NCBI RefSeq assembly: GCF_011386835.1
Contig: NC_088814.1
Coordinates: forward strand, 5,456,001-5,520,000
DNA: 64,000 nucleotides
Direction: 5' to 3'
Origin: Chrysemys picta bellii
Taxonomy: Eukaryota
In this document: positions 2,645-35,322 of the stretch, piece by piece
How the letters are laid out: each line of letters starts with the position of its first letter
How positions within the stretch are numbered: the stretch's first letter is position 1
Program-made: the position numbers and the translations under genes
Notes under the pieces: model-generated
Told to the model about the DNA's origin: nothing
What the model saw: only the letters and a program-made list of their open reading frames with translations
The model's database searches: none

Positions 2645-3115
2645 AGGAGCCAATAGGAGGGTGAGCTGGACCGTCTGGATTTTTGATTGGCTGTGATACA
2701 TATCAATCATCGTCTGTAGTGACCAATCGCATAACTCTACCGAAAAAAATCCCGCCTATTTTTAGTGTACTTCTCCCCTCCGTTCACTTGTCAATCAATT
2801 ACCAGTGGGCGATAGTTTGGTCTCCCGTCTATTGGTAAGCCGCACCGTCAATCAGAAATCGGTCTTTCTATTGGTCGTCCGCATCCGTCCGTCATTCTCA
2901 AATCAGCCGCCCATTGGTGCAGCCGGCACTCCATCACTGGGTTCGCTTGATCGGCGGAGACGCCAATCAGGCGTTAGTGGCATTTGATTGGTTAGTGCAA
3001 GTGTGTCAGTGCTCCCATTGGCCAGGAAACGTGCTGGTCGGGTGGGGATTGGCCGTACGGCAGCCGAGGGGGCGGGGCATTCAGGGCGGCGCCCGGGCGG
3101 CCGAGGAGGAGGAAG
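2645..3115 (+). promoter_or_regulatory. SP2: SP2 CpG-island promoter with 10 CCAAT/ATTGG boxes
   Basis: Boxes at 2650, 2686, 2723, 2831, 2870, 2913, 2963, 2987, 3017, 3048; GC box near 3070; CpG-rich to about 3480. Confidence 0.8.
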
Positions 3116-3123
3116 ATGGCGCC
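3060..3123 (+). other. SP2: SP2 first exon (5' boundary uncertain) containing an upstream AUG at 3116
   Basis: GGAAGATGGCGCC followed by the donor-like GTGAGG at 3124, inside the CpG island; alternative weak donor GTCGGA at 3132. Confidence 0.55.
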
Positions 3124-3482
3124 GTGAGGGGGTCGGAGCCGCCGCCGCCTCCGCTCCAGCCGGGTCTGTGCACTTCGCTCCCCCCCGCCCGGGGCGCGGG
3201 GGCCGGGCGGGCGGGGCACGGGGGCTCCCGCCCCGGGGCCCGAGAACGGGGGCAGGTCGCGGGGGAGGGGCCGGCCCGGGGCCCCGGCAGCGGGGCGGGA
3301 GGGCGGGAGCGAGCGGCGCCGACCCGGGTGGAACGGGGACCCGGAAGGGGGCGTGGGGCCCTGCTCCGCCCTCCCCGGGCTACGGGCGGGCGGCGCTTCC
3401 GGGGCCCGGGAGGAGGCGGGACGGGCGGGGATAACCCGCCTCCCCGGGGACCCGCAGCTCTTGCTGCGCCGGAGTCTCGGGG

Positions 3483-4460
3483 GGGACTTGCAGGGTCCCC
3501 GGTGCATTGGGGGCGCTCGGGATGGGCAGGGGGGAGGGAGGTTTGCAGGGTCCCCGGTGCATTGGGGGGCGCCAGGGATGGCGGGGGGGGAGGGAGGTTT
3601 GCACGGTCCCCCGGTGCATTGGGGGGCGCCACGGATGGGCAGGGGGGAGGGAGGTTTGCAGGGTCCCCGGTGCATTGGGGGGCGCCAGGGATGGGCGGGG
3701 GGAGGGAGGTTTGCAGGGTCCCCGGTGCATTGGGGGGCGCCAGGGATGGGCAGGGGGGAGGGAGGTTTGCAGGGTCCCCGGTGCATTGGGGGGCGCCAGG
3801 GATGGCGGGGGGGGAGGGAGGTTTGCACGGTCCCCCGGTGCATTGGGGGGCGCCACGGATGGGCAGGGGGGAGGGAGGTTTGCAGGGTCCCCGGTGCATT
3901 GGGGGGCGCCAGGGATGGGCGGGGGGAGGGAGGTTTGCAGGGTCCCCGGTGCATTGGGGGGCCCCAGGGATGGGCAGGGGGGAGGGAGGTTTGCAGGGTC
4001 CCCGGTGCATTGTGGGCGCCAGGGATGGGCAGGGGGGAGGGAGGTTTGCAGGGTCCCCGGTGCATTGGGGGCGCCAGGGATGGGCAGGGAGGAGGGAGGT
4101 TTGCATGGTCCCCCGGTGCATTGGGGGGCGCCAGGGATGGGCAGGGGGGAAGGAGGTTTGCAGGGTCCCCGGTGCATTGGGGGCACCAGGGATGGGCAGG
4201 GGGGAGGGAGGTTTGCACGGTCCCCCGGTGCATTGAGGGGCGCTAGGGATGGGCAGGAGGTTTGCATAGTCCCTTACTGCGTTGGGGTGAGCATAGGGGA
4301 TGGCATGGGGGGGGTTGTATGGTCCCCCGGTGCATTGGGCTGGACATTGGAGGGGCACTAGGGGTGGGCAGGGAGACTTGTGTGGTGGCTAGGGTGAGGG
4401 ACACTGGGATTGAGGGGTGTGGAGGTTTGCATGGGCCCGAGTGCATTGAGGTGGGTGTGG
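3483..4460 (+). repeat. G-rich minisatellite, about 56-bp unit, 14 near-perfect copies to about 4260 then degenerate
   Basis: Unit GGGGGGAGGGAGGTTTGCAGGGTCCCCGGTGCATTGGGGGGCGCCAGGGATGGGCAG; CCGGTGCATT recurs from about 3499 to 4224 at about 56-bp spacing. Confidence 0.95.
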
Positions 4461-20751: not shown

Positions 20752-20852
20752 GTGATAAGCGTTTTGAGTGTGCGCAGTGCCAAAAGCGCTTCATGAGAAG
20801 TGACCACCTGACGAAGCACTATAAAACCCACCTGGTCACCAAGAACTTGTAG
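20752..20852 (+). CDS. SP2: Sp2 zinc finger 3 and stop
   Basis: [33 protein letters not shown]; joined CDS is 1788 nt, 595 aa. Confidence 0.98.
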
Positions 20853-21854
20853 GCTTAGCGGCAGCCAGACGGGGGCCGCCAGCTGGCCCTCTAAGCACTG
20901 GCTAAGGCCCGCACTGTCATGGACAGTCCCTGGCAAGGGTACGGCGTAGGGGTTGGGCAGACGGCCAGCCTGGAACTCCGCAGCCGTAGTCGCGCTCCTG
21001 GCTTTGATACCCTCCCAGAGGTGTCCGCGCGGGGAGAGGAGTCATTGCTGATCTTCCTTCCTTGGAAGCCATCCGCCTTCCAGCACAATCCTTGGGAATC
21101 CAGCTCCTTCCTCCGCAGAGCGTGTCAGAGCCGGACATTGATCGCACGGGCCGGGACGAAGGAGAAGCCCTTGTTTCCAAAGGAAAATGCTGACATGGGT
21201 GCGAGCGGCAGCCCCTCCTCGCTGTGCCGCAGGCTGGGGGGACTGAACAAGCAGGGCCGTGCCAACCTCGTGTAAACGGCACAAGGATGCCAGCGAAACT
21301 TTCTCACGGTGGGCCCCCTCCTCCCCGCGCTTGTGAAGCTTTGACACAGCAGGGGGCAGCACTCCACAGACAGCCCACCCGGCGCTCTGCGGCACATTCC
21401 TACTTTATATTTAAAATCTATAAATATCTATAAATATCTCTCTATATAAACTCCTTTGGAAGGTCCTTTTTTTCTATGGAAATTGTTGCCTTACGCTCCC
21501 AGCTCCCGAGTATGAACATTGTGTATCGTGAGTGCTTTTTTTTTTTTTTTTATTATTTAATTGTGCCCGGTTAATAATCTCCCCTCCCAATCCTTTTCCC
21601 TCCAAAGTTCTTTTCCAATAATGAATTGAAGAGGGTTTTTTCCTCTCCGCTGATTTATTTTTCCTTTTCATTTCCCAGTGACACGGCGTTTCCTTTTGAA
21701 TCTTGGATCTTTAAATCCTCTTTTGCCCATAATGCCGACCCCCCCCCCCCACCTCCCCGCACTGTGTATAGTGTATATTGTATCATAGACTATATTGCTT
21801 CCGTGTTTACTACATGTTTCAAAAACATATGGCTTGTTATTTTTGAGCTTTTAA

Positions 21855-22001
21855 ATTAAAAAAAAAAATCCACTTTATTTTTTAGGTGTAACTGCTTGAG
21901 GTATGTTTTATGAATTAAGTGACCGATCTGTTATTCTTTATTAACGATGTAACTGGCTGGCTGGTGCAGAGTCAGCCAAGAGTTTTTTCTTGCTAAATAA
22001 A
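21855..22001 (+). terminator. SP2: Candidate SP2 polyadenylation signals
   Basis: ATTAAA 21855-21860 and AATAAA 21996-22001 after a U-rich 3' UTR. Confidence 0.5.
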
Positions 22002-23364
22002 TTTAGTCGCCAGAGGCAAACCCAGCATGGGAAGCAAAGGATCCTTTGTCTCGTAAGCGTGACGTCCGGTAAGAGAGACCAGCTTTTGGGGAGAGGTGAG
22101 AAGGTTAGTTGGGGGGGTGACCGGGTCAGTTGTTTATACACAGCACCAAGAGACTCGCCGAGATTTCAACCCACTGGAGCCACCTACATTGTCTCTGCCC
22201 CAAGGAGCTGACAGTCTACCTAGACCAGGCAAAGGCTGGGAGGAGAACGATCGGCACACAGAGGGGAAGTGATCTGCTCAGGATCAGTGGCAGAGCTGGG
22301 AATGGAACCGAGGTGTCCTGAATCCCAGGCCAATGCCCCACCCACCAGACCACACTGTTATTTGTATTAAGGCCCCATTGTGCTAGGAGCTGTACATTAG
22401 AATAAGAGACAGTCCTTGTTGCAAAGAGCTTTACAGTTGCTGCCCACTGGCTTTCATCTTTTGGAGCATCTCTTTAATCCTCCCGAGCTTCACCCAAAAA
22501 AGGATGCAGTTGGGCCGGACCTCAGAACCATCTGTGGGTCTGCAAGTCCTTCTCTGGATGGGGCGACACACGCTTTACCCTCTAACCTGCCTGACCTTGG
22601 GAAACGAGCTGCTGGTCCCCCCCAGACGAGTGTCCATGTGGAGATGAACCACCATGGCCATAATCCCCCTCGGGGGCATTCTCAACCAAAAATCAGAGGG
22701 AGGGGGCTGGCCCCTTTAAACCCCCTTCTCCAGGGCTGGGGCACTGTTGGGGAAGCCCTCGTGTGCTCCCTGCTCTGGGTACCCAAAGGCCTTCAATCAA
22801 GCCCCGTTCACCAGCCCCGGGCAGGAAAAAGTACAGCCCATGACTTTCAAAAGCTGCCCGGTGACCTGGAGGGTGGGAGAAATTGCTCTGGAACTGGAGT
22901 CATTGGAAAGTGTCCCCCTACCTCCATCCCTCCCCCTCCACACACACGCTGCCCCTACTGTGCTCTGTTAACATCTCCTGGAAGCGAGAGAAGGAGCCTC
23001 TTAAAGGAGCCAGCGTCATCGTTAGCTCGTTCTCAGGAATGGGAAAGTGGGAACTGCTCCATTCTGAGCCTGCCAGAGGAGGCCAATAATGCACCAAAGT
23101 GGCCACTTAGAATTCTCTTTCAGAGAGGCCTTCAGGCTGGATCATGGCTCAGGGGGTGGGTAAGAAATAGTTCAGGATCTGGGACAGGAGGGAAGGAACT
23201 ACGGTTAAAATTACCCAGCCTGTTTTGGCTGAGTCTACTGTAGGCAGCTTAGCATCCCAAGATGCTACTTTTAATCTCTATAACAACCCTAGCGACTATA
23301 AATTCCACGATCTTGGGGAAGCAGTAAGGAGGAACAACTGAGCCTGCACTGTTACATTCCAGCC

Positions 23365-23405
23365 TTTATTAGGGAAGTTGGGAGGAGAGGAAGGATTGTT
23401 TTATT
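23365..23405 (-). terminator. Candidate polyadenylation signals of the BEN-domain gene
   Basis: Two minus-strand AATAAA (plus TTTATT at 23365-23370 and 23400-23405), about 0.9 kb past the stop. Confidence 0.5.
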
Positions 23406-24268
23406 TACAAGAAATAGAGTATTTATGGGAACTTTCTTTACAGGGGGGGGAAAAAATGTCTCGCCCACCGTTAAATTCTTACAGGCGAGCAGAGAACTTG
23501 CCTGTTGAGCCAGGCCACGAGTCTCCGCAGGAGAGCAGACCTTGCCCGATGGGAGGGAGACTGAATCCCCCCTCACTCCACAGACTAAAGCTCTGGGTTT
23601 ATCTACAGGCCCGGCCGGTAAACAGTCCGGTAAGAACTGTTTCAAAGCAGAAGTTCCCCTGCTCTGGCCAGAAAGTCCAGTGCCGTGACTGCGGCACTGT
23701 CCCTCTTCCAGTCTGATGTGCTGGGAGAAGCGCTTGCCCAGAGGTGGAGGAGAGGGCCGCAGCGTTAATGTTCAGCGTCACGGAGCCGGGATTCCAGAAT
23801 GGAGCTGACGAGTTTTGAAAGAGGACAGAGATCATCCCTCCCTCCTCAGGGACTCGTTAGAACGGAAGAACACACCCGCCAGCTCGCTTCTCCCCCAGGC
23901 GCGGCAGATCCCAGACGCTTCCAGAAGGCGTAAGTCACTCCTCCCCAGGAATGCACGCACCGAGGTCTGCAGGCTAGGACTGAGCGCCCCAGGACGGCCA
24001 CACAACAGGCGCTTCAGGCCCCCCGGGGCATGTACTAAGTGCACGAGAGCTCAAACTGCGCCACTGCTGCCCCCGTAACGCGTGCCGGGAGGGGCGCGTT
24101 ATCTCCACCGCGCTCACCCCCAGAGCTGCTGTGCGGGAGGGGACCTGGGCCGCCAGCACCCCAGCGTCCGTTGGCGCGGGGGCGACGACAGATCCTCTCA
24201 GGAGCGTTTTCAGAGCTGGTTCGCCGTTGTCTTGATGGACGTTTGGGAGGCCCTGGCCCAGGCGCCAT

Positions 24269-24378
24269 CTACTCCATCTTGATGATCATTTTCTTGACCG
24301 CCCTCCGGGAGGTGCCACACTTGCTGTTGATCACGGCGTTGAAGTTGCAGCTCTTGCCGCACACTTTGGTGACGTACT
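24269..24378 (-). CDS. BEN-domain protein, last coding exon
   Basis: Acceptor CCCACCCTCCTCCAG; (E)YVTKVCGKSCNFNAVINSKCGTSRRAVKKMIIKME*; phase 1 matches the preceding exon; resembles the NAC1 BEN end NAIAADMCTNARRVVRK as I recall it. Confidence 0.88.
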
Positions 24379-25753
24379 CTGGAGGAGGGTGGGGAGGGCA
24401 GAGAAGTGGAGCAAACAACCAGAGGCGCTCTGGCTTTTTATGAATCCACTGAGATGAATCCCGCCGGATACCAGCATGCAAAACCCCTAAGACCCTGCAG
24501 CATGTGGGACCCAGACAAGGGCACCAGGCTCTCATCCCAGAGGTGCTACTAACTTGCTCTGCGGCCTGGGGCATCACCCATCCAATCTGATCTTGCATTT
24601 AGCCCGTTGGTCTCTTCACCCTCTGTGTCTGAATTCTTTGCTGCCGAACGGGGTGGTAATCCCTACATCATAGGAAGTGCACGAGGGCGGCGGATTAACT
24701 AGATCAGAAACACTAGTGAGTTGAAGGTGTGTAAAGCACGGGGGGACGTGACTGGGGATCTGGGCTGCCTTGGCTTGTGGGTGCCCAATCTGAGACCCCT
24801 TGATGGGGTTTTCAGAAAGCACTTAGCACCGGCACTCTGAAAATCAGGACCCTTTAAGGTGCCTCGAGTGGACCCTTTCTGGAACCCTTGGCCTGCATCT
24901 GCCGTTAGAATTGTTCCGGCGTCTCCGCCTGTCCAACCCAGGCACACAGCTTGGGGTATTTAAAGCTAACCCTCTCTTTCTGCATGTGCTTCTCACCACT
25001 AATGCTTCTCACCACTAATGCTGGGTGGTTATGTTTTGTAATTCGCTGGGCTGGGCCCAATGACTCTTTTGGCAGTAACAATGCTGCTGTGTTTGGGGGT
25101 CCTGAACTACGGCAGAAGGGGGAGTTGTACCAGCACAGATTAGGGTACGGATAAAATATATTCCCAAATAGCAGATTGGATGGTTCGAGGGGCTGGGAAT
25201 GGGCTCTGAGCTTTTCCTCTCTAAGTCCCCAATTCAAATCAAGCCCGGCTTGCCAGGGACTGAAAATCATCATCTCCCTGGGGCGGTGCATGGCCAAGGT
25301 GAAAGGAGTGGGGCGGCTCGGTCCTCTTTCCAGTAGACAGCTAGTCCCGACCACCCCGGCACTAACTGGCCAGCTCTGGCAGTCTCAGCAGGGGAGCTGA
25401 GAACTGAACCGGGCATGCAGACCGGAAAGGCTGCCCGAGGAAAACCCCAAGCAGGCCTCAGCCCCGTTGGCTTTGCTGTGGGACGGACGCTTGAAGTGCC
25501 CCTGCCGGTGCTATCTGCCGGCTCTGTGGATTCAGTCCCAGGCAGTCCGACTTCGCACCAAACAGAACCCCTCCTGCTGGGCAAGGACAATGGAGGAGGT
25601 GAGCAGAAGGAACCTGTCGGTCAGGATCAAACAGCGTCATCCTGTCCCTTTTGTGGGGGATCGTCACCATGTGCGCTCTCCACCCTCTGCGTCGTCAGGA
25701 GCCCCAGCCTCGCCCCATCTCCCTCCACAGAGCCCCCTGCCCACCCCCCCTAC

Positions 25754-26000
25754 CTTTGATAGCATTTACCACTGCGACCGGCAGGCGGATGGGTTTCTCC
25801 ATGGTCGTGTTGTTGTGGGCGATGCGCTGGCCGGTGGCCGAAGACCTGGCGAGCGTCTCCCGGGAGAAGAAGTAATCCAGCAGGCGCCTGGTCATCAGCT
25901 TGGGCTTGTCGGTAGAAACCTGCGAGAGGTCGTCCAGCTGGTGGTGGGTGACGTAGACCCCCGAGTTGGGGATCAGCTCCAGCTTGGGTCTCCCATTCTC
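25754..26000 (-). CDS. BEN-domain protein, BEN core exon
   Basis: ENGRPKLELIPNSGVYVTHHQLDDLSQVSTDKPKLMTRRLLDYFFSRETLARSSATGQRIAHNNTTMEKPIRLPVAVVNAIK; phase 0/1; aligns by eye to NAC1 KLELVTGTNVYITRAQL...[22 protein letters not shown]. Confidence 0.9.
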
Positions 26001-26277
26001 CTATGGCAAAGGGAGAGACGCCCCTCGTCATTCTGCTCTTTGTGGGTGCCCGGAGTCTGGGGAGACTCAGGCAGACCCCACCGTGCAGGCTAAACAAGCG
26101 ACAGACGCTGGGCTAACCCCAGCTGTCCTCTCTCAGGCCCAATCCCATTGATCTCAGTGGAGGGGATATCAGCCCTCGTTTTACAGATGGGGAAATTGAG
26201 GCACTGAAAGGTTGAGTAACTTGTCTTAGGTCACACAGCACGTTACTGGCAGAGCTGGGAATATAACCCAAGAGTTA

Positions 26278-26433
26278 GGGGGAGGGATAGCTCAGTGGTT
26301 TGAGCATTGGCCTGCTAAACCCAGGGTTGTGAGTTCAATCCTTGAGGGGGCCATTTAGGGATCTGGGGCAAAAATCTGGTCCTGTTGGACTAGATGACCT
26401 CCTGAGGTCCCTTCCAACCCTGATATTCTATGA
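26278..26433 (+). mobile_element. Tortoise-type tRNA-derived SINE
   Basis: Same head as 6116; CR1-like tail GTCCCTTCCAACCCTGATATTCTATGA. Confidence 0.85.
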
Positions 26434-27355
26434 AGACTAGTCTTTCTATGAAAGTCCTGCTCCAACCACTAGACTCCACTCCATCCTACAGCCAGGATTA
26501 GAACCCAGGATTCTTGCCTCCGTGCTCTAGTCACTCGACCGCACTCCTGCCTCTAAACTGGAATTTAAGCCTTTAAAATAGGGCAGGAAGGTGTTTGTCT
26601 GAGAGCAGGGGCCACACTCAGAGCTCCAAGCTGAGTCCTGCCAATCACCCCAGATACTATAGGGCAAACCTGCACCCCATTGCTCTCGGGAGAGCTGCCA
26701 GAGCTTGGACAACGCCCCCGGAGCCAGCAATAGGAGTCTCCTCTCTCATTCAGCCAGGAGAGGCTTAATGCTCCATTTCTGCAGTCCTCAGGAATCCAGG
26801 CACCTTTTAAGGCTGGAGCAGCTGCCTGTTTGGGCTCGGTTCTCCTGCCCAGCGCGGCGGGGGGCAAGCGTGGGCCCAGGGAATCGCAGAAGCCTGAGCT
26901 TGGCATGCGCTGGCTGATCGGTAAAAGGAAGAACCGAGGTGCGTCTGTTGCCGATTCAGGAAGACCCCCGTCGCAGCCATTTCCCCAATCCGTTCAGAGT
27001 CTGCCTGGGTCCCCTTTAAGAGAGCTGGAAGTGGTATGGGTGGGGCAGGATATGGAGCCTTTGATCCAAACAAAGAGGGAGGGGATCTCAGAGCAGGGCC
27101 CGGTCAGCTTCCCTAGGGAAGCTAGGAAGTAGCTGTGGTCCCTCCAAGTTCAGCCTCTGCCCAGACCAGTGTGGGACCGAGGTGTCCACCTGTCCTGCTG
27201 GAAGGGTAGGGATGGTCCTGGCTCCAAGGAGAAAAGATAATGCCCAACACTACCTCTCCCCCCGAGGTGTGTGCCCTCCCGGGGTCCCATTAGGCAGCAT
27301 CCCCAGGCATTCAATGACCAATGGCCCACATAGGAGCCGATCGCGAATCACCCAC

Positions 27356-27601
27356 CTCCACGGGCGACGCCCACACCGGGGTGCCATCGGGCAGCGTATC
27401 TTGTATGTTCTCCTCCCATAAGCAGGTGGCATCGCTGAGCGTGACGGGGCTCCCCGAGCCGTCCTCTGTGCTCATCCAGGGTGGGAAGCCGCTCGGGACC
27501 CCAGCTCGCATCCTCCAGACTGGGGGGCTTTTGGGGACCTCAGCTGGGGTGCACCTCTGCTCCCCCACAATGGGAGAGGTGAATGGCTGGAGGCCATTGG
27601 C
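27356..27601 (-). CDS. BEN-domain protein, Pro/Ser-rich linker exon
   Basis: Acceptor CTCCTATTGCAG, donor GAG|GTGGGT; 246 nt open, ANGLQPFTSP...WASPVE; phase 0/0. Confidence 0.78.
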
Positions 27602-28206
27602 CTGCAATAGGAGCGAATGCGTGGGGATGCCACGGACAGAGATGTGTGGTGGAAAAACTGAGTGATAAATTAGCTACCCCTTCCTGCCTCCGCCCCTCCC
27701 TGCTTCCCAGGAGGGGATAGGGCCTCCATAAGCTCTGGCCCAACCTGCTTTCAGTTCTCAGCTCCTCAACACCAGAAGGAAACTGGAGGGTGTTCAGAGA
27801 AGGGCTGGAGGAACTGAGCTAAATCGGTGAGGCTTGGCTAAACAGGAGGACGTGATCAGAGGCTATGGAGGGAGGAAACACCAAGGGGGTGCCCAGGAGA
27901 CTCGGCTTGCCCCTGCAATGATACAACGGGGTTTAACTGTGATATTGGGGGGTGGGGGGTGAAGAATGACAGCAGAGGGTGTGGGATCCTCTCCCCAGGA
28001 GCAAAATCCCTCCATTGTCTGGAATAGTTAAAATTACACTGGGGCAACTCTTAGAAAATGTTCTCCAGGGCTGCGGGGCTGGGCAGATGGGCTCGAAGGG
28101 GATTTCATCATCTCCGGCCTCCGATTCGTACACACCCAGGGAAGCCTTTCGCCTCCACGGTGCTGGTAGCTACCGCTCAGACAAGGGGAGACACTGGGGC
28201 ACCCAC

Positions 28207-28277
28207 CTGCAATGCTGCGTTGCTCTCCAGCAGCCCCACCAGGGCTTTCAGGAATTGGATGTTGCTCTCGTTGATGT
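28207..28277 (-). CDS. BEN-domain protein, short helical exon
   Basis: Acceptor TGTCTCTCCCCAG, donor CAG|GTGGGT; (D)INESNIQFLKALVGLLESNAALQ; its phase 1/0 bridges the neighbouring exons. Confidence 0.8.
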
Positions 28278-28929
28278 CTGGGGAGAGACATGTGCACAGA
28301 GACAGAGCTGAGCATCGCAGAGGAATTCCATCCCTGGCCAGGCCTCAGGCCGAGCTGGGTCACACGAGAGTCCCAGACACGCACAAAGAAGAGGGGTCCT
28401 TCCCTATCCACCCTGCTGCTCACCTGGTGCCCACTTCTTGCCCAGAGCCCCTACAGGTGTCTGTCTCTTTGATCCCAGCCCAGGAGCCTCTCTACAGAGC
28501 TGGCACCCGTGCAGCTGCCCAGATGGCGGGCCGTGCTCTTCTCTCTAGGCAGCACCACTAGAGTTGCAGCCACCACACTCGAGCTGGAGGTGGGACCCCA
28601 CTGAACGCCCAGCCAGGCGCAGGGGGAGGCCAGAGCTCACACATGGGTATCCCCAGCTCTAACCTAGGGACATGGGGTTTGCCCGGCTGGATCACACCAT
28701 TGGTCCATCAGGCTAAGCTGCTGCCTCCAGGCCTGACACCTCAGGATAAGGTGACGCCCCCACCACGCACGCTCTGATGCCGCTAGCCCGCTGGGCACCG
28801 TTTTAAGTGGGGAATGCAGAGACCAGCTGGGGCCTTGGAGCCCGAGAGCGGGTTAACGCCATCGGAGCTGGCCTAGCTGCAAACTGCCTCCACGATGCTA
28901 AGGCAGGAAAGGAAGGAGGATTGGGTTAC

Positions 28930-29600
28930 CAACACCGCCGTTTCCGGACCCCAGCACCGTCCTGCCTGCCGCTGCCCCTGCCCCGTTCCTGCTGGAGAGG
29001 AGGTCGTTCTGCTCCTCTAGGTTCCGGAGCTGGCTCTTCAGCTGCTGATTCTCCAGCTCCAGCTCCTTGATCCTCCTCTCCTGCCACATGGCGGCCTCTT
29101 CCCGAGAGGCGAGGAGATTCCGCAGCTCGGACATCTGCAGCTCCAGCTCCTTGACTAGCTCAGCGTATAGACCCGTCACCTTGCTCGCTCGGCTGCTAAT
29201 GCTGCTGCCTCCCGAGGGAGCTCGGCTGCTCCATGGGCAGCCGTCCTCGAGTCCGTAATTCAGGGATGGAGACTCCAGCTGCTCTGTGCTGGGCCTGTAG
29301 AGCACCGAGGCCCCAGAATGAGCGGCTCTGGGATTGTCCAAAGTCCTGGTGTGTGGCAGCCCGTCCTGGGGACGTCTGCTGTGGAGATCCAGGCTATTGC
29401 TCTGAAGGACGTGTCCGAAGGGGGACGGGCCCTGGGGCTGTGGCCCGCTCAGCGCACGAGGGAAGTGAGAGACAAGGCTGGGACTGGCCTGGGGTCCGTT
29501 GGAGAGCCTGGGTCTTTTCCGGTTCTTGATCTCCTCTTCCACGCACAGCAGAGAGTGGCTGGGCCTCCCAAGACTGCTCAGGGCTCCATGGGGTTGGGCG
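28930..29600 (-). CDS. BEN-domain protein, exon with basic NLS-like motif and coiled coil
   Basis: Acceptor TTTTGTCTGCTTCCAG, donor G|GTAACC; contains KNRKRPR and LYAELVKELELQMSELRNLL...IKELELENQQLKSQLRNLEEQNDLL; phase 2/1. Confidence 0.85.
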
Positions 29601-30269
29601 CTGGAAGCAGACAAAAGCCAAGAAGAAGCGAGTATAATGAAATCACATCTTTCCAGCCCTTACTGTCTCCAAATACTGTACAAACTGTGTGCATGCACAT
29701 GTGCGCACGCAGCAATCACATCGCCCACCAGTGAAATGCAGCCACCTCTGGGGTGGTATGTGGCAGCTGTTTAACACGGCAATTTATGGGAGGAAGTGAA
29801 GGAGAATGTTAAATCCACTTGAAACTCCAGGGGGAATTTCTGGAGGTAGATTGGAACCGCTGGAACTCCACCACTGGGCAGGCTACTGGGGCTAAGTCTT
29901 GTGAAAAGTTCCAGAGGATCTTTAATGGTCACAAGCCTTCAGGGTTGTGGCTTTCGGTGTAATTCAAGAGACAGTACATTCAAAGCCCCTCTGACTTCAG
30001 TGAGCATTGCAGGGGCCTCGCACTTCTGCGAATCCAACCTAAATTGCTGCTAAACACCTCCTGGCATGCTGCCGAATCACCAGCACTGGGGTGGTCTGGG
30101 GAAGTCTCCTGGACAAAGACTAGGCTCTGCTTAGCTTGTGAGATCAGACAGGTCCTAGTGACAAAGAGCTCTTCCATTCCCCCCCGCTACCGCTATCGTA
30201 TTCACTCGATCTAGGGACTTAGATGGCCCTCCTCACTGCAGCATCAGAGCCCCTCACCCTTATTAATGG

Positions 30270-30715
30270 ACTCAGATTCCCAGGCCAGGAAGGATCAATG
30301 TGATCATCTAGTCTGACCTCCTGTACACCTCAGGCCAGAGAACTCCCCCAAACAATTCCCAGGGCAGATGGTCTAGAACAACACATCCAATCTTGTTTTT
30401 AAATTGCCGGTGATGGAGACTCCACCATGACCGTTGGTCAATTATTCTAATGGGTAATGATCCTCACTATTAAACATTTACATCTTATTTCCAGTCTGAA
30501 TGGATCTAGCTTCATGGGAGCGTATTAGACCTTCCTCTTCTAGATTGAAAAGCCCATTATTAAATATTTGTTCACCATGTAGGTACTTACAGATCAAGTC
30601 ACCCCTCAACCTTCTCTTTGTTCAACTCAACAGATTGAGCTCTTTCAATCTATCACTACAAGGCGTTTTCTAATCCTTTCCTCATTCTTGTGGCTCCTCT
30701 CCAATTCACCTTCAA
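30270..30715 (-). mobile_element. CR1 3' fragment
   Basis: Reverse complement of CR1 ORF2-end/3' UTR motifs (GATCATCTAGTCTGACCTCCTG, CCAGTCTGAAT...CTAGCTTCA). Confidence 0.7.
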
Positions 30716-30724
30716 AGCACACCT

Positions 30725-30858
30725 GGGGTTTTTAAGGTCAGGCTTGACAAAGCCCTGGCTGGGATGATTTAGTTGGGGATTGGTCCTGCTTTGAGCAGGG
30801 GGTTGGACTAGATACCTCCTGAGGTCCCTTCCAGCCCTGAGATTCTGTGATTCTATGA
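30725..30858 (+). mobile_element. Short CR1/SINE 3' end
   Basis: GGTCCTGCTTTGAGCAGGGGGTTGGACTAGAT...GTCCCTTCCAGCCCTGAGATTCTGTGATTCTATGA. Confidence 0.75.
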
Positions 30859-31434
30859 TATGGGGGAACTATTCTCCCCACCTTACAGACGGGGAATTAA
30901 GGCACGGGATAGAATAAGCAACCTAAAGAGTCCGCAGCAGAGATGGGTGTAAAACCCAAGGCCAGCGCCCTCTCTGCTACGCTCACACGAGGTTCTGAAT
31001 TGTAGCTGCTGCTTCTGGGGCTGTGCAGAGTCATTCCCTAGGAATTGGGACCAGAGGGCTAAGGGGAATGGGAGCTGGTGCCTTTTCCCTGTCAGGGACA
31101 GTTCAAATCCAGGCCAGTGTCTGCCAGCTGTTCCCCTCAGGTGACTGTTCGAAATAAGTTTCAGGGTCACAATCCAGTTCCTGCGGGGCAGGTGTCCCAT
31201 AACAACAGCAACCATTAAAGCTGGCGGGGAAGTAGCTTGCCCAAGGTCACCCATCAGACCAGTAGCCAAGCCAGGAATCAAACCCAGGTCTGCTGAATCC
31301 CAGTCCAGTACTCTAGCCTCGAAGCCACACTGCCTTCTGCAAAAAGTCACCTCAGGCCCCCACTACTGTGCCTTCTCAGCAGTTCTCAGTGGGTCCAGCT
31401 GGGTGACTCTGTTGTGGCATGTCCCCCCTCATAC

Positions 31435-31649
31435 CTGGTACATTCTGGGGGGGCGTGTCCTCGGGACTCCTGGAGCTCCAGCTCCTGGGGCTGTTGGAAG
31501 TCAGGGCTGCAGAGAACAGCACCTTCCAGTCCAGGCTCAGGCAGTTTGTACAGTGGGTGATCGTCTGGCTGCTCGCCATCTCCCATCCCTTGGTCCATGG
31601 CCTGGAGGTGGCTCTGCAGAGCCTGCAGGTCAGTGACACCACCAGACAT
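31435..31649 (-). CDS. BEN-domain protein, first coding exon (exon begins at NAGNAG acceptor 31718/31715)
   Basis: MSGGVTDLQALQSHLQAMDQ...APPECT; donor AG|GTATGA, phase 2; in-frame stops upstream of the ATG; joined CDS is 1560 nt, 519 aa. Confidence 0.78.
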
Positions 31650-32167
31650 TGCCTCTCATAGTCACACCTTCCAGCCCCAATGAAACATAGTGGAGGAGAG
31701 GGAGGAAAACTCAACCTGCTGAAGAGAGAAAGAGATGGGAAGAGACACCAGCAGGAAAAAAGAAATGGAAAAGGATTGTATACAAATGCCAGTTTTGATC
31801 TGACACTGTCCTAACACCCTCACTGTTGATCCAGCCCCCAACCTCTACCCCTCAGCACCCACACACACCTTCTCTTGGTTTAGGATTTGTTTAGCTTTCC
31901 AGCCTTCTCTCTAATTAGCCCCATCACCCTCTCCTCTGACCTGGTTCCCCCATCTCCCTCCCCTCTCTCTGATGCACACGTCCCCCTCCTTGTCCCACAT
32001 CTGATTCCCCAACCCCCCCTCTAAAAACAGCCCTTTGCCTATTTTGACACCTGCTTCTCCCTCATCCTGGCCCTGCACTGCTCTCTGTTCCCTTCTCCTC
32101 CTCCATTACTACCCCTGCCTTGATCACCCACTTTGCCCTCTGTCTGGCCTCCTCCCTTTCTTGAAAC

Positions 32168-32505
32168 CTCACAGAATCATAGCACTGGAAGGGACCTTGA
32201 GAGGTCATCTAGTCCAGTCCCCTGCACTCTAGGCAGGACTAAGTATTAGCTAGACCATCCCTGACAGGTGTTTGTCCAACCTGCTCTTAAAAATCCCCAA
32301 TGATGGAGATTCCAAAACCTCCCCAGGCAATTTATTCCAGTGCTTAACCACCCTGACAGGAAGTTTTTCCTAATGTCCAACCTAAACCTCCCTTGCTGCA
32401 ATTTAAGCCCATTGCTTCTTGTCCTGTCCTCAGAGGTTAAGAAGAACAATTCTTCTCCCTCCTCCTTGTAACAACCCTTCATGTACTTGAACCTGTCTAT
32501 TCCTG
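32168..32505 (-). mobile_element. CR1 3' fragment
   Basis: Minus-strand translation FKYMKGCYKEEGEELF...TRSNGLKLQQGRFRLDIRKNF (CR1 ORF2 end). Confidence 0.88.
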
Positions 32506-32559
32506 TCTCTTTTCTCCTCTTCCTTTCCTTGTCCTCTGTCTGATTTCCCCCCACTCATG

Positions 32560-32865
32560 ACATCTGTCTGATCCCCACCCTCTTCTCCTTGCCCTGACTA
32601 AACCCACTTGTCTTCTATCTGGAGCCTTGTCTGCCCCCCCCCTTCCTCCTCCTCTCTGTTTTCCCCACATGTCCCCTGTTTGCCCCTTCCCTCTGTCTAT
32701 TCCCCCCACATGTCCCCTGTCTGCCCCCTTCCCTCCTTGCTCCTGTCTGTTCCCCCCACGTCCCCTTCCCTGTTTCCTCCATATGCCCCCCTGTATGGAC
32801 CCTCCCTTTCGTCCCCCACCTCCTGTTATCCACCCCCATCCTTCCCTCCCCCCGGGACACTGTAC
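32560..32865 (-). repeat. Degenerate C-rich (G-rich on minus strand) repeat
   Basis: Recurrent CCCCCACATGTCCCCTGT(C/T)TGCCCCCTTCCC blocks. Confidence 0.7.
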
Positions 32866-33119
32866 CTTTAACATCCCCTCCATGTGCCTGTTTACAGCCC
32901 TGACACCATTTCCTGGTCCCCGAGTCCCGCCCCTGCCGCTTCCCCACTGGCTGAGGTCTGGCCCTGTCTCCCGTCTGATTGGAGGCCAGGGATCGGCTCC
33001 CTATTGGCTGCTGGGACAGGGGCGTGAGCTGAAATCGCCCCGCCCCGGCGTGCGGGACGTCCGGCGTCCTGCCCTCTTAAGGGGCGGGGTCTTTGCGCGC
33101 GCGCGGCGGGGGCGGGGCT
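32866..33119. promoter_or_regulatory. Bidirectional CpG promoter for PNPO and the BEN gene, including a probable non-coding BEN exon 1 ending at 32866
   Basis: ATTGG at 32978 and 33003; GC boxes near 33040, 33081, 33110; minus-strand donor AAG|GTACAG at 32866/32865; strand skew flips across the island. Confidence 0.7.
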
Positions 33120-33254
33120 ATGATGCGTTACGCGGCGCGGAGGGGGCTGCGCGTTTGGGCCTGGCTCGGCTCCCGTCCTCCTGGGCAGGTGCTGGCGCCG
33201 GCTGCAGCCATGGACCTGGGGCCCCTGAGGAAAAGCTACCGGGGGGACAAGGAG
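33120..33254 (+). CDS. PNPO: Pyridoxine/pyridoxamine 5'-phosphate oxidase exon 1
   Basis: MMRYAARRGLRVW...AAAMDLGPLRKSYRGDKE; donor GTGAGA. Confidence 0.9.
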
Positions 33255-33261
33255 GTGAGAG

Positions 33262-33895
33262 GGGTCCGGGGGGGGAGGGGCACGTGGGGAGGGATCCAGG
33301 TGGGGGGGGGCTACAGGGGCCTCCCGGGGGGGCTACAGGGGTTCCCGTGGGGGAGGGGGCTACAGGGGGGGTCCTGTGGGGGAGGGGTCCTGGTGGGGGG
33401 GCTACAGGGGGAGTCGGGAGGGAGGGGTCCTGGTGGGGGGGGTCCCGGGGGGACGGGTCCTGGTGGGAGGGCTACAGGGAGGTGGGGGGGGGCTGCAGGG
33501 GTCTCCTGGGGGGGGAGCTATGGGGGGTCCGAGGGGGCTACAGGAGCCTCCTGGGGGGGGTACAGGGGGGATCCAGGTGGGGAGAACTACAGTGGAATCG
33601 GGGGGAGGGGTCTGGGGAGGGGCTACAGGGGGAGTTGCGGGGGAGGGGTCCAGGTGAGGGGGGCTACAGGGGAGGTCTGGGGAGGGGCTATGGGGGGGGG
33701 TCTGGGGGGGGGGGCTGCAGGAGGGTCCTGGTGGCAGGGCTACAGGTGGGTCCAGGGGGGGGGGGGGGCTTGGTGGTGGAGGGGCACGTGGGTGCTACAG
33801 GAGGAGGGGACTTGAGAAGGGGGGAGTCCCGGTGGGGGAGGGGCAGGTGGGAGGGTTCTAGAGCGGGGGCTCAAAGAGGGAGGTGAAGGGGGCGA
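33262..33895 (+). repeat. G-rich degenerate minisatellite in PNPO intron 1
   Basis: About 11 exact CTACAG cores embedded in G-runs (GGGGGGGCTACAGGGG...). Confidence 0.85.
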
Positions 33896-34484: not shown

Positions 34485-35322
34485 ACCCACAGGGCTGTGC
34501 CTGGCTTTAATAGCCCGCCCCTTCTTTCTAAGGACTTGGCTACACGAGACAGTTATAGCGGTATAAGCTAAAACGTGAATTTAGATTGTGGCTGTTCTGG
34601 TATAACCCCGATGTGGACACTCTTATTCGGGTTGAGAGGGCCTTTTGACAAGTTAGCTTATGTCAGTTGGGAAGGGTTGAAGTTAAACCAAAAAATCTCC
34701 CCATTTATTCCAGAATAAATGTGTCCACTTGTGGGGCTACACCAGTATAATTAGTTTAACCGGTAAAACTTTCCCATAACCACCTGTGAGGGACCTAAAT
34801 ACTAATCTTAATTTACAGGGGAAACTGAGGCACAGAGAGGCGAGAGGGTAAGGTCCTGCAGAGCTGGGACTAAAATCCAGGTCTCCTGACTCTCAGGTCC
34901 ATGATTTAAGCTTCGAGACCAGCCTTTCCATTACTCAGCATGGGACAAGACAGCAGCTTCAGAGCTCAGCTGACCTAAAAAAAAATCAACAAGCAGTGAA
35001 TGAAATAAAAAACCAGAGTGTTCTCCAGTGGCTAGAACAGGTAGATGGGCAGGACAGCGTCAGGACGTTAGGTTCTGTTTTGACTCTGTCATTGGCTCAT
35101 TGTGTGACTTTAAGCAATGTGCCTCCTTTCAAATGTGGATAATCAGAGACCGTTCAGCGGGCCGGGAGTTGTGATGCTAAACTCCTGTGGGCTGGTTCCT
35201 GCAGCTACAGGGTTAGCAGGATTTGAGATGATGTGTGGGAAAGCGAAGGATCCTGACGGTTGATGGGTGGGGGTGTAACACTCCAATTCTTCTGCTCCTC
35301 TCCCCGTTTCTGTCCTGTGCAG

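Follow-up and report, generated by a model that had tools for sequence, protein, structure and literature searches.

A deeply conserved BEN-domain gene at the PNPO promoter of the painted turtle and its broken remnants at placental SP2-PNPO loci

A coiled coil followed by a single C-terminal BEN domain is the layout of BEND5, BEND6 and Insensitive. BANP has the same architecture as the turtle protein reported here, an oligomerising coiled coil and then a single C-terminal BEN domain, and its oligomerisation shapes DNA selection (PMC11472053). Nine BEN proteins are described in human, and the gene of the turtle protein is absent from that set (PMC11472053). The NACC1 domain contacts DNA through R400/R401, G419-x-R421 and R468/R469 (PMC11472053). 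NACC1 and NACC2 (PDB 8YZS and 7BV9) share a BEN layout of two strands and five helices, which is implied for the turtle protein, and the RR in helix 2, the GxR in the loop between helices 3 and 4 and the RR in recognition helix 5 are conserved in the turtle family. The turtle protein differs from both in carrying a coiled coil instead of a BTB/POZ domain, in lying at another locus and in having no placental copy. With BANP, BEND5, BEND6 and Insensitive it shares no recognisable sequence apart from the BEN domain.

At the level of the locus, XIST is a long non-coding RNA (lncRNA) fossil of a coding gene, Lnx3. Such fossils of protein-coding genes have been described in mammals (Hezroni et al. 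2017, PMC5577775). Like them, the present locus pairs a coding gene that outgroups have kept with the lack of an intact ortholog where the lncRNA occurs; going by the literature, synteny and strand would match as well, and the locus holds residual similarity with disabling lesions. Unlike them, the loss of the BEN gene is placental and not pan-mammalian, and its remnants are known at the locus level. As in other head-to-head promoter pairs, PNPO and the BEN gene have their 5' ends in a single small CpG island, where CCAAT, GC-box and ETS-like elements are shared, and this layout has persisted from shark to mammals. In contrast to the usual bidirectional pairs, one partner would have turned from a coding into a non-coding unit in a single lineage, with the promoter retained.

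The window is a stretch of 64,000 nucleotides of the painted turtle genome (Chrysemys picta bellii, NC_088814.1, positions 5,456,001 to 5,520,000), and 7381 nt of it matched Chrysemys picta CM062341.1 without a difference. Between SP2 and PNPO it contains an intact, spliced and expressed gene on the minus strand that encodes 519 amino acids and corresponds to RefSeq LOC101935747, "uncharacterized" (Table 1). By reading of the sequence, it has six coding exons and every intron is GT..AG; the coding sequence is 1560 nt, that is, 519 codons and a stop. Searches were made exon by exon, each piece was found at the correct offset in the RefSeq protein P0022 (519 aa), and this identical database protein stood for the full-length product. 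The literature search returned no mention of the LOC names of the gene, nor of a BEN unitary pseudogene.

Table 1. Features of the BEN gene and its neighbours, in positions of the window
Feature	Position	Strand	Content and basis
SP2 stop and 3'UTR	20850..22020	+	Stop 20850-20852; ATTAAA 21855, AATAAA 21996; ORF reading and signal scan
Last exon E6, whole	23345..24378	-	3'UTR of about 0.9 kb; polyA signals 23405-23400 and 23370-23365 (signal scan)
Last exon E6, coding part	24269..24378	-	End of BEN domain, helix with invariant SRR; TAG 24271-24269; P0022 residues 485-519
Exon E5	25754..26000	-	First (N-terminal) two thirds of BEN domain; Pfam BEN E 1.7e-8; P0022 residues 402-483
Exon E4	27356..27601	-	Linker, C-terminal end is the conserved DTLPDGTPVWASPVE; RNA contigs over 27355-27600; P0022 residues 320-401
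Exon E3	28207..28277	-	Conserved short helix NIQFLKxLVGLLES; joints 28930|28277 and 28207|27601; P0022 residues 297-319
Exon E2	28930..29600	-	RNA joints at both ends; P0022 residues 73-295
E2, content	28930..29600	-	KNRKRPRL nuclear-localisation motif, disordered stretch, coiled coil (KVTGLYAELVKELELQ...LEEQNDLLSS)
Exon 2, first coding exon (cE1)	31435..31720	-	ATG 31649; acceptor AG 31722-31721; donor after 31435; P0022 residues 1-71 (71 aa)
Candidate non-coding exon 1	32866..32913	-	Donor TTAAAG|GTACAG, exon ends at base 32866; 5' limit estimated (about 32913)
Promoter shared head-to-head by PNPO and BEN gene	32800..33200		CCAAT boxes, GC box, ETS-like GGAA, E-box-like CACATG
PNPO exon 1	33116..33255	+	ATG 33120, ...MDLGPLRKSYRGDKE; X10 RNA contig 33116-33255; PNPO annotated in painted-turtle record

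Spliced RNA contigs from four runs in four studies crossed the joints 31435|29600, 28930|28277 and 28207|27601, the first of which (cE1 to E2) was present in four runs. At the 5' side, the acceptor at 31721/31722 is in use: run X1 has a contig ending at 31720, a match of run X10 stops at 31718, and a 1996-nt contig carries 32 extra letters 5' of this acceptor that have no placement in the window. Runs X10 and X2 showed low read depth in the bin 32701-32900. The donor at 32866, together with the 40 nt before it, is near-identical in the loon and lies at the edge of the CpG-rich stretch, 254 nt from the PNPO ATG. In the scan, CpG observed/expected reached 1.0 only in 33000-33199, the core of a true CpG island. 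The used acceptor, the read depth, the loon-conserved donor and the CpG-rich edge together give good support to a start of BEN gene transcription within the PNPO promoter, at a candidate, approximate site. The initial annotation had placed a minus-strand BEN gene here with this candidate donor, an apparent start in the PNPO CpG island and a tail-to-tail end with SP2; the gene, its strand and its end were borne out, and the start is well supported.

PNPO exon 1 and the BEN gene are divergent, with 5' ends about 200-250 bp apart (the BEN start is estimated); taken from donor 32866 to the PNPO contig start, the distance is below the 1 kb used to define bidirectional pairs. SP2 and the BEN gene are convergent, with about 1.35 kb between their polyA signals. 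The promoter block 32982-32800 aligned to the loon (243/374 over a longer alignment, 33059-32701) and to the fruit bat (126/191); shuffled sequences scored 14-18. The head-to-head order of PNPO and the BEN gene holds in turtle, loon, opossum (synteny read from the gene table) and shark, and in these four lineages their coding sequences start 1.0-1.5 kb apart. The pair is thus at least as old as the common ancestor of jawed vertebrates.

At the protein level, P0022 scored 46.1 bits against Pfam BEN (PF10523) over residues 437-504, above the gathering cut-off of 23.2, and the opossum ortholog scored 44.1 bits. The E2 coiled coil gave weak Pfam matches to coiled-coil families, and its heptad-like columns are invariant in the ortholog alignment. 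The solved structure closest to the C-terminal domain is the BEN domain of NACC1 (profile E 1.3e-13, about 108 residues). NACC1 R400/R401 align to T438-R439 of the family, where the next position is Arg or Lys; G419-x-R421 corresponds to G458-x-R460 and R468/R469 to R508-R509, and these columns are invariant across orthologs. By our own mapping, the base-reading Asp462, Thr465 and Asn466 of NACC1 are Ser, Gly and Thr in the turtle protein. Since these three side chains differ, the turtle protein likely recognises a motif other than CATG, as far as can be judged from sequence. It is predicted to bind DNA as a dimer. An AlphaFold model of this domain, built on a 13-sequence alignment, had a mean pLDDT of 54, too low for use in a fold search.

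Sharks, coelacanth, amphibians, reptiles and birds each have one strongly conserved copy of the gene, and the named ortholog groups also include squamates, tuatara, turtles, crocodilians and marsupials. A search with the BEN region found 104 orthologs, from sharks through marsupials, none of them placental. An exhaustive HMMER search of 1.84 billion representatives with the coiled-coil exon returned 16 matches, which were orthologs only; none of the named ones was placental, and a few Logan contigs were unnamed. No placental or monotreme ortholog was found in the sequence collections searched. Identity of the BEN domain to the turtle is about 70% in sharks and 96% in marsupials, at least 11 of which have an intact ortholog; the opossum copy lies at the same locus. 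The coding gene is therefore conserved in outgroup vertebrates and has no intact ortholog in placentals, which does not extend to mammals as a whole. The proposal that mammals lost the reading frame was wrong as stated, because marsupials retain it, and an intact mammalian ortholog at this place had been named beforehand as grounds for rejecting it; the loss is placental, a call that leaves monotremes aside.

We examined the SP2-PNPO locus of a fruit bat, a capuchin monkey and two rodents among placentals. In the bat (locus L003, 39647-39437), a remnant of cE1 matched residues 1-71 of the marsupial protein (tblastn E 1e-7 to 4e-7), with 65% DNA identity and a z of 29. Its ATG has become ATA and it carries a frameshift; its own acceptor AG and donor GT are both kept. 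In the capuchin (locus L006), an E4 remnant (45988-45771; E 2e-6, z 20) has a 1-nt deletion and keeps one GT, and a remnant of E5, the first BEN exon (45651-45563; E 0.01-0.09, z 9), retains a polypyrimidine tract and an acceptor AG, followed by a frameshift and a stop. All remnants lie on the strand opposite SP2 and follow the order of the turtle exons. With reversed sequences the best E was 0.002, and the remaining three loci gave 0.08 or worse; a profile HMM put the same three remnants at the top. Neither tblastn nor the profile HMM found a trace of E2, E3 or E6 in the bat or capuchin interval, and the two rodent flanks, which stop short of PNPO, gave no significant match. Two other candidates were set aside: a capuchin tblastn match at 45275-45198 was an Alu translation, and a weak match in the vole by a predicted 72-aa gene (E 0.38) was put down to chance, being no counterpart of the bat remnant. 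Since different exons survive in bat and capuchin, with no overlap, there is no common lesion by which to date the loss to the placental stem.

Residual exon similarity had been set in advance as the decisive test of whether a coding gene was the ancestor of the lncRNA SP2-AS1, and it was found in three exons, each with disabling lesions. The idea of a coding ancestor thus stands in so far as decayed coding exons lie at the placental locus, and falls in its claim on all mammals. For the human transcript we relied on literature annotations. Published work puts SP2-AS1 at the CpG island of the PNPO promoter, extending into SP2: a DMR at the PNPO promoter carries the label PNPO/SP2-AS1, and a SNP about 23 kb away (chr17:45,995,891, hg19) is labelled SP2-AS1. 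These labels agree with the initial annotation, in which SP2-AS1 runs from the PNPO promoter back into SP2. Given the decayed remnants and this placement, the placental locus would be a defunct gene whose bidirectional promoter has survived and still drives transcription, with the position of SP2-AS1 as given by the papers.

Taken as a whole, we regard as rather probable that an ancient BEN gene decayed in place in placentals and that SP2-AS1 is read from its old promoter. In the turtle, the PNPO promoter would drive the gene from its antisense side, and the product would be a nuclear protein that dimerises and binds specific DNA sequences. In placentals, the coding gene would have decayed in situ, some exons being deleted and others left as broken remnants, and the promoter would have been retained because PNPO requires it, still firing both ways. 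Human SP2-AS1 would then start at the former BEN-gene promoter, cross the remains of the gene and continue into SP2. We infer that it descends directly from the transcription unit of the BEN gene. That SP2-AS1 and its placental orthologs descend from this tenth vertebrate BEN gene, with the same promoter and inherited splice sites (e.g., the AG and GT of cE1), is possible though less likely than not, and we propose it tentatively.

Beyond the promoter, the resemblance could also be a coincidence, with SP2-AS1 a generic divergent transcript of PNPO whose exons and polyA sites are new, for example from repeats. CpG-island promoters commonly fire both ways, by established knowledge and in the discussion of Hezroni et al. 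(2017), so an antisense transcript is expected here even without an ancestral gene. The donor of the non-coding exon 1 is mutated in the bat (GT>AT), so that continuity at the exon level is not guaranteed, most exons have left no trace, and SP2-AS1 runs well beyond the old 3' end into SP2. In addition, the text and the accessible supplementary tables of Hezroni et al. (PMC5577775) list neither SP2-AS1 nor PNPO among fossil lncRNAs. However, the remnants lie within the span of SP2-AS1 on the same strand, and the splice signals kept in the bat cE1 and in the capuchin E4 and E5 fit poorly with such a coincidence, which we consider rather unlikely.

Two further readings have far less in their favour. 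The surviving first coding exon might yield a short functional product in placentals, so that SP2-AS1 would not be truly non-coding; an upstream in-frame ATG in the bat does open a 66-codon ORF, the first 30 or so residues of which are homologous to the ancestral N-terminus. This ORF is known from one species, the ancestral start codon is gone, the frameshift puts the exon's conserved second half out of frame, and the DNA identity is that expected of neutral decay since an early loss, all of which makes a micropeptide very improbable. Still less probable is a placental gene that moved or diverged past recognition: distant relatives may escape word-based searches, but the exhaustive HMMER scan had no placental among its named matches, broken remnants sit at the ancestral site, and an intact copy would be easily found, since the BEN domain is so nearly identical between turtle and marsupials.

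The decay of an ancient gene in place, with SP2-AS1 read from its promoter, would add this locus to the known lncRNA fossils. It offers a concrete and easily testable case in which, at a bidirectional promoter, a coding gene has become a lncRNA or been overwritten by one. If SP2-AS1 does descend from the BEN gene, the transition from coding gene to lncRNA would be datable to after the marsupial-placental split, and placentals would have as a trait of their own the loss of a DNA-binding regulator that is deeply conserved elsewhere. For SP2-AS1 as a cancer marker, our findings suggest a transcript that may largely be a by-product of PNPO promoter activity. The gene stands for a BEN-domain regulator, so far unnamed and unstudied, that is deeply conserved and that a whole clade, the placentals, does without, and marsupials, birds and frogs, with the gene intact, make a functional comparison possible.

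Between the SP2 stop codon and PNPO exon 1, the minus strand of the window reads as a complete gene (LOC101935747), here called the BEN gene. The first coding exon is cE1 (exon 2 if a candidate non-coding exon 1 is counted), and E2 to E6 are the later ones. Introns are GT..AG throughout with compatible phases, and the coding length is 1560 nt (519 codons plus stop). We compared the model exon by exon with P0022, the RefSeq "uncharacterized protein LOC101935747 isoform X1" of Chrysemys picta bellii, and found each exon piece at the expected offset. The 7381-nt coding span is letter-for-letter identical between the window and CM062341.1 of the same species.

Coding exons of the BEN gene and flanking landmarks (window positions)
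Feature	Position	Strand	Basis
SP2 stop codon	20850-20852	plus	
E6, ends in TAG	24378-24269	minus	sequence reading
E5	26000-25754	minus	sequence reading
E4	27601-27356	minus	sequence reading
E3	28277-28207	minus	sequence reading
E2	29600-28930	minus	sequence reading
cE1, ATG at 31649	31720-31435	minus	sequence reading
PNPO exon 1, ATG	33120	plus	

At the transcript level, RNA contigs from four public runs (four studies) lay on the BEN-gene exons only. They joined 31435 to 29600, 28930 to 28277, and 28207 to 27601, with plus-strand CT..AC at each joint, which shows that the runs are RNA and that transcription follows the predicted model. On the 5′ side, one contig of 1996 nt carried 32 extra unplaced letters 5′ of the 31721 acceptor, two runs had slight depth at 32701-32900, and one contig continued in a colinear run to 31787, perhaps reflecting an intron retained in the RNA or a second start.

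The candidate exon 1 ends at the donor TTAAAG/GTACAG (last exon base 32866), nearly identical in loon, and the promoter block around it (CCAAT boxes, GC box, GGAA, CACATG) can be aligned to loon and bat. CpG enrichment proper is limited to 33000-33199, and the GC-rich stretch beyond is a G-rich repeat of PNPO intron 1. From the placement of exon 1, promoter block, and CpG core, PNPO and the BEN gene lie head-to-head about 200-250 bp apart, with the turtle transcription start a predicted one. At the 3′ end, the gene has AATAAA signals on the minus strand (23405-23400 and 23370-23365), and about 1.35 kb separates them from the SP2 polyA signals that they face (ATTAAA 21855, AATAAA 21996). The initial annotation described a minus-strand gene starting on the PNPO side and ending tail-to-tail with SP2; exon reading, the P0022 match, RNA joints, and the signal scan confirm this, with the start as the part that we infer.

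If exon 1 is as proposed (32883-32866 joined to 31720-31662), the 5′ leader contains an upstream ATG (ATGGAGGGG...), which opens a short ORF reaching TGA before the main ATG. Loon has an ATG at the same place.

The window also holds several repeats. A G-rich minisatellite at 3488-4257 (55-bp unit, about 14 copies, 92% match), in a stretch with 77% GC content (3001-4000), gives long spurious ORFs in all frames. At the start of PNPO intron 1 (33328-33765), degenerate tandem repeats, G-rich and CpG-poor with units of 25-70 bp (GGGGGCTACAGGGG...), inflate the apparent CpG island, which is larger by GC content than by CpG count. In every run, the intronic stretches 30700-30900 and 32170-32470 drew contigs by the thousand, with very high depth and many variants. 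They are interspersed repeats outside the BEN transcript, and their ORFs resemble CR1/LINE tail fragments.

At the protein level, Pfam detected a single C-terminal BEN domain (46 bits against a cut-off of 23). The closest solved structures are of the NACC1 BEN domain (8YZS, 7BV9), matched with E-values of 5e-8 for one exon and 1.3e-13 for the family profile. In its complex with DNA, NACC1 makes contacts at three places (PMC11472053): helix 2 supplies a pair of Arg residues, the loop between helices 3 and 4 a G-x-R, and the recognition helix Arg468/Arg469. The positions aligned to these contacts vary little or not at all across orthologs from shark to opossum. Three base-reading residues differ from NACC1, and for this reason we expect DNA binding at a motif other than CATG. 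Three conserved elements lie upstream of the domain: an invariant basic motif (K-x-RKRP), which is likely a nuclear-localisation signal; a coiled coil of some 60 residues, strongly conserved; and a short helix. By analogy with other coiled-coil plus BEN factors, the protein would most likely act as a nuclear dimer or oligomer on specific DNA sites. The predicted structure had a mean pLDDT of 54, too poor for use. Human BEN proteins number nine, and the BEN-gene product is not among them (PMC11472053); our literature search found no paper on the gene.

With the coiled-coil exon as query, exhaustive HMMER scanning retrieved only 16 representatives. The named ones were all orthologs (turtle, caecilian, axolotl, frog, coelacanth, shark, and birds), and thus the coiled-coil region has no detectable paralog. 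The BEN-region search retrieved 104 proteins, all named "uncharacterized". They came from sharks, coelacanth, frogs, salamanders, caecilians, lizards, tuatara, turtles, crocodilians, many birds, and marsupials (opossum, koala, wombat, Tasmanian devil, dunnart, bilby, and others), whose BEN domain is 96% identical to that of the turtle. None of the 104 was from a placental, a monotreme, or a ray-finned fish.

Painted turtle, loon, and opossum share the order PNPO (divergent), BEN gene, SP2 (convergent). The shark locus likewise has PNPO head-to-head with the BEN gene, next to an SP-like zinc-finger gene. The same head-to-head pair in shark, turtle, loon, and opossum makes it ancestral to jawed vertebrates. 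The initial annotation had mammals losing the ORF, but marsupials (opossum) keep an intact gene at the locus, a finding that the initial annotation itself had named as refuting, so the claim does not hold for mammals and the loss is placental at most.

In the shark Heptranchias perlo (L007 21842-28724), the SP-like gene shares its strand with the BEN gene instead of being convergent with it as in tetrapods; this is either an inversion or a different SP paralog. Bird orthologs are shorter (about 390-430 aa; e.g., P0011, 399 aa; locus L002 10001-12083). Most of what exons 1 and 2 encode N-terminal to the coiled coil is missing from them, and the whole gene has shrunk to about 2 kb. The matches listed include no galliform or passerine.

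For placentals, we retrieved SP2 proteins with the stop-free reading of a loon SP2 exon and took the SP2 loci with 10 kb of flank from four species: fruit bat (Pteropus alecto, L003), bank vole (Myodes glareolus, L004), pocket mouse (L005), and capuchin (L006). The bat locus contains the entire SP2-PNPO interval (7.9 kb). Using tblastn with 11 orthologs as queries, bat 39647-39437 matched marsupial residues 1-71 (E 1e-7 to 4e-7). This cE1 remnant is antisense to SP2, about 1 kb from the PNPO ATG; it is broken into two frames and its start codon is ATA, with acceptor and donor (CCAG/GTAAGG) both retained. In capuchin, 45988-45771 matched E4 (E 2e-6 with alligator, 3e-5 with marsupials), with a 1-nt deletion and the GT of the former donor retained. 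About 140 nt beyond, 45651-45563 matched E5, the first BEN exon (E 0.01-0.09), where the polypyrimidine tract and AG are intact and a frameshift and a stop follow.

Against shuffles, turtle exons scored z = 29, 20, and 9 on the antisense strand at the DNA level, and the same test gave no signal on the sense strand. In reversed-sequence controls the lowest E was 0.002, at one locus; the other three loci gave no E below 0.08. The family HMM ranked the same three pieces at the top. The bat locus keeps the order of the turtle gene: promoter block (40445-40262), cE1 remnant, E4/E5 site, and SP2 3′ end; the bat lacks a 4-kb segment that spans the E4/E5 site. We found no trace of E2, E3, or E6 in the examined placental intervals, and nothing significant in the rodent flanks, which do not reach PNPO. 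Together, these remnants look like a unitary pseudogene. With one bat and one monkey as their sources and no overlap between the pieces, they do not allow the loss to be placed on the placental stem.

In bat (39654-39454, minus strand), a 66-codon ORF begins at an in-frame ATG further upstream, and its first 30 or so residues share homology with the ancestral N-terminus; this ORF was seen in a single species and probably has no significance. In vole (22051-23860, minus strand), a submitter-annotated 72-aa protein with no Pfam family lies antisense to SP2, just downstream of it. It overlaps a block common to bat (34812-35053), pocket mouse, and capuchin; this could be a rodent antisense-transcript exon or an extended SP2 3′UTR.

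The initial annotation proposed the BEN gene as a possible protein-coding ancestor of the human lncRNA SP2-AS1, and the residual exon similarity that this called for is there at the locus in bat (cE1) and capuchin (E4, E5). The locus is not known to be among the lncRNA fossils tabulated by a systematic study (Hezroni et al. 2017, PMC5577775). SP2-AS1 may have exons inherited from the BEN gene. The preserved splice sites of the remnants favor this; the mutated exon-1 donor in bat, and the general readiness of CpG-island promoters to yield divergent transcripts, count against it.

For the position of SP2-AS1, one paper annotated a DMR across the human PNPO promoter (chr17:46018654-46019184, hg19) as PNPO/SP2-AS1, and another annotated a SNP at chr17:45,995,891 as SP2-AS1. 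Together, they make SP2-AS1 span at least from the PNPO promoter to about 23 kb back. We take that point to be well inside SP2. SP2-AS1 would thus start at the former BEN-gene start and run on the strand of the remnants, across the interval that holds them in primate and bat. With its position taken from these annotations, this start, strand, and span make a shared promoter with a dead gene underneath a well-supported reading of SP2-AS1.
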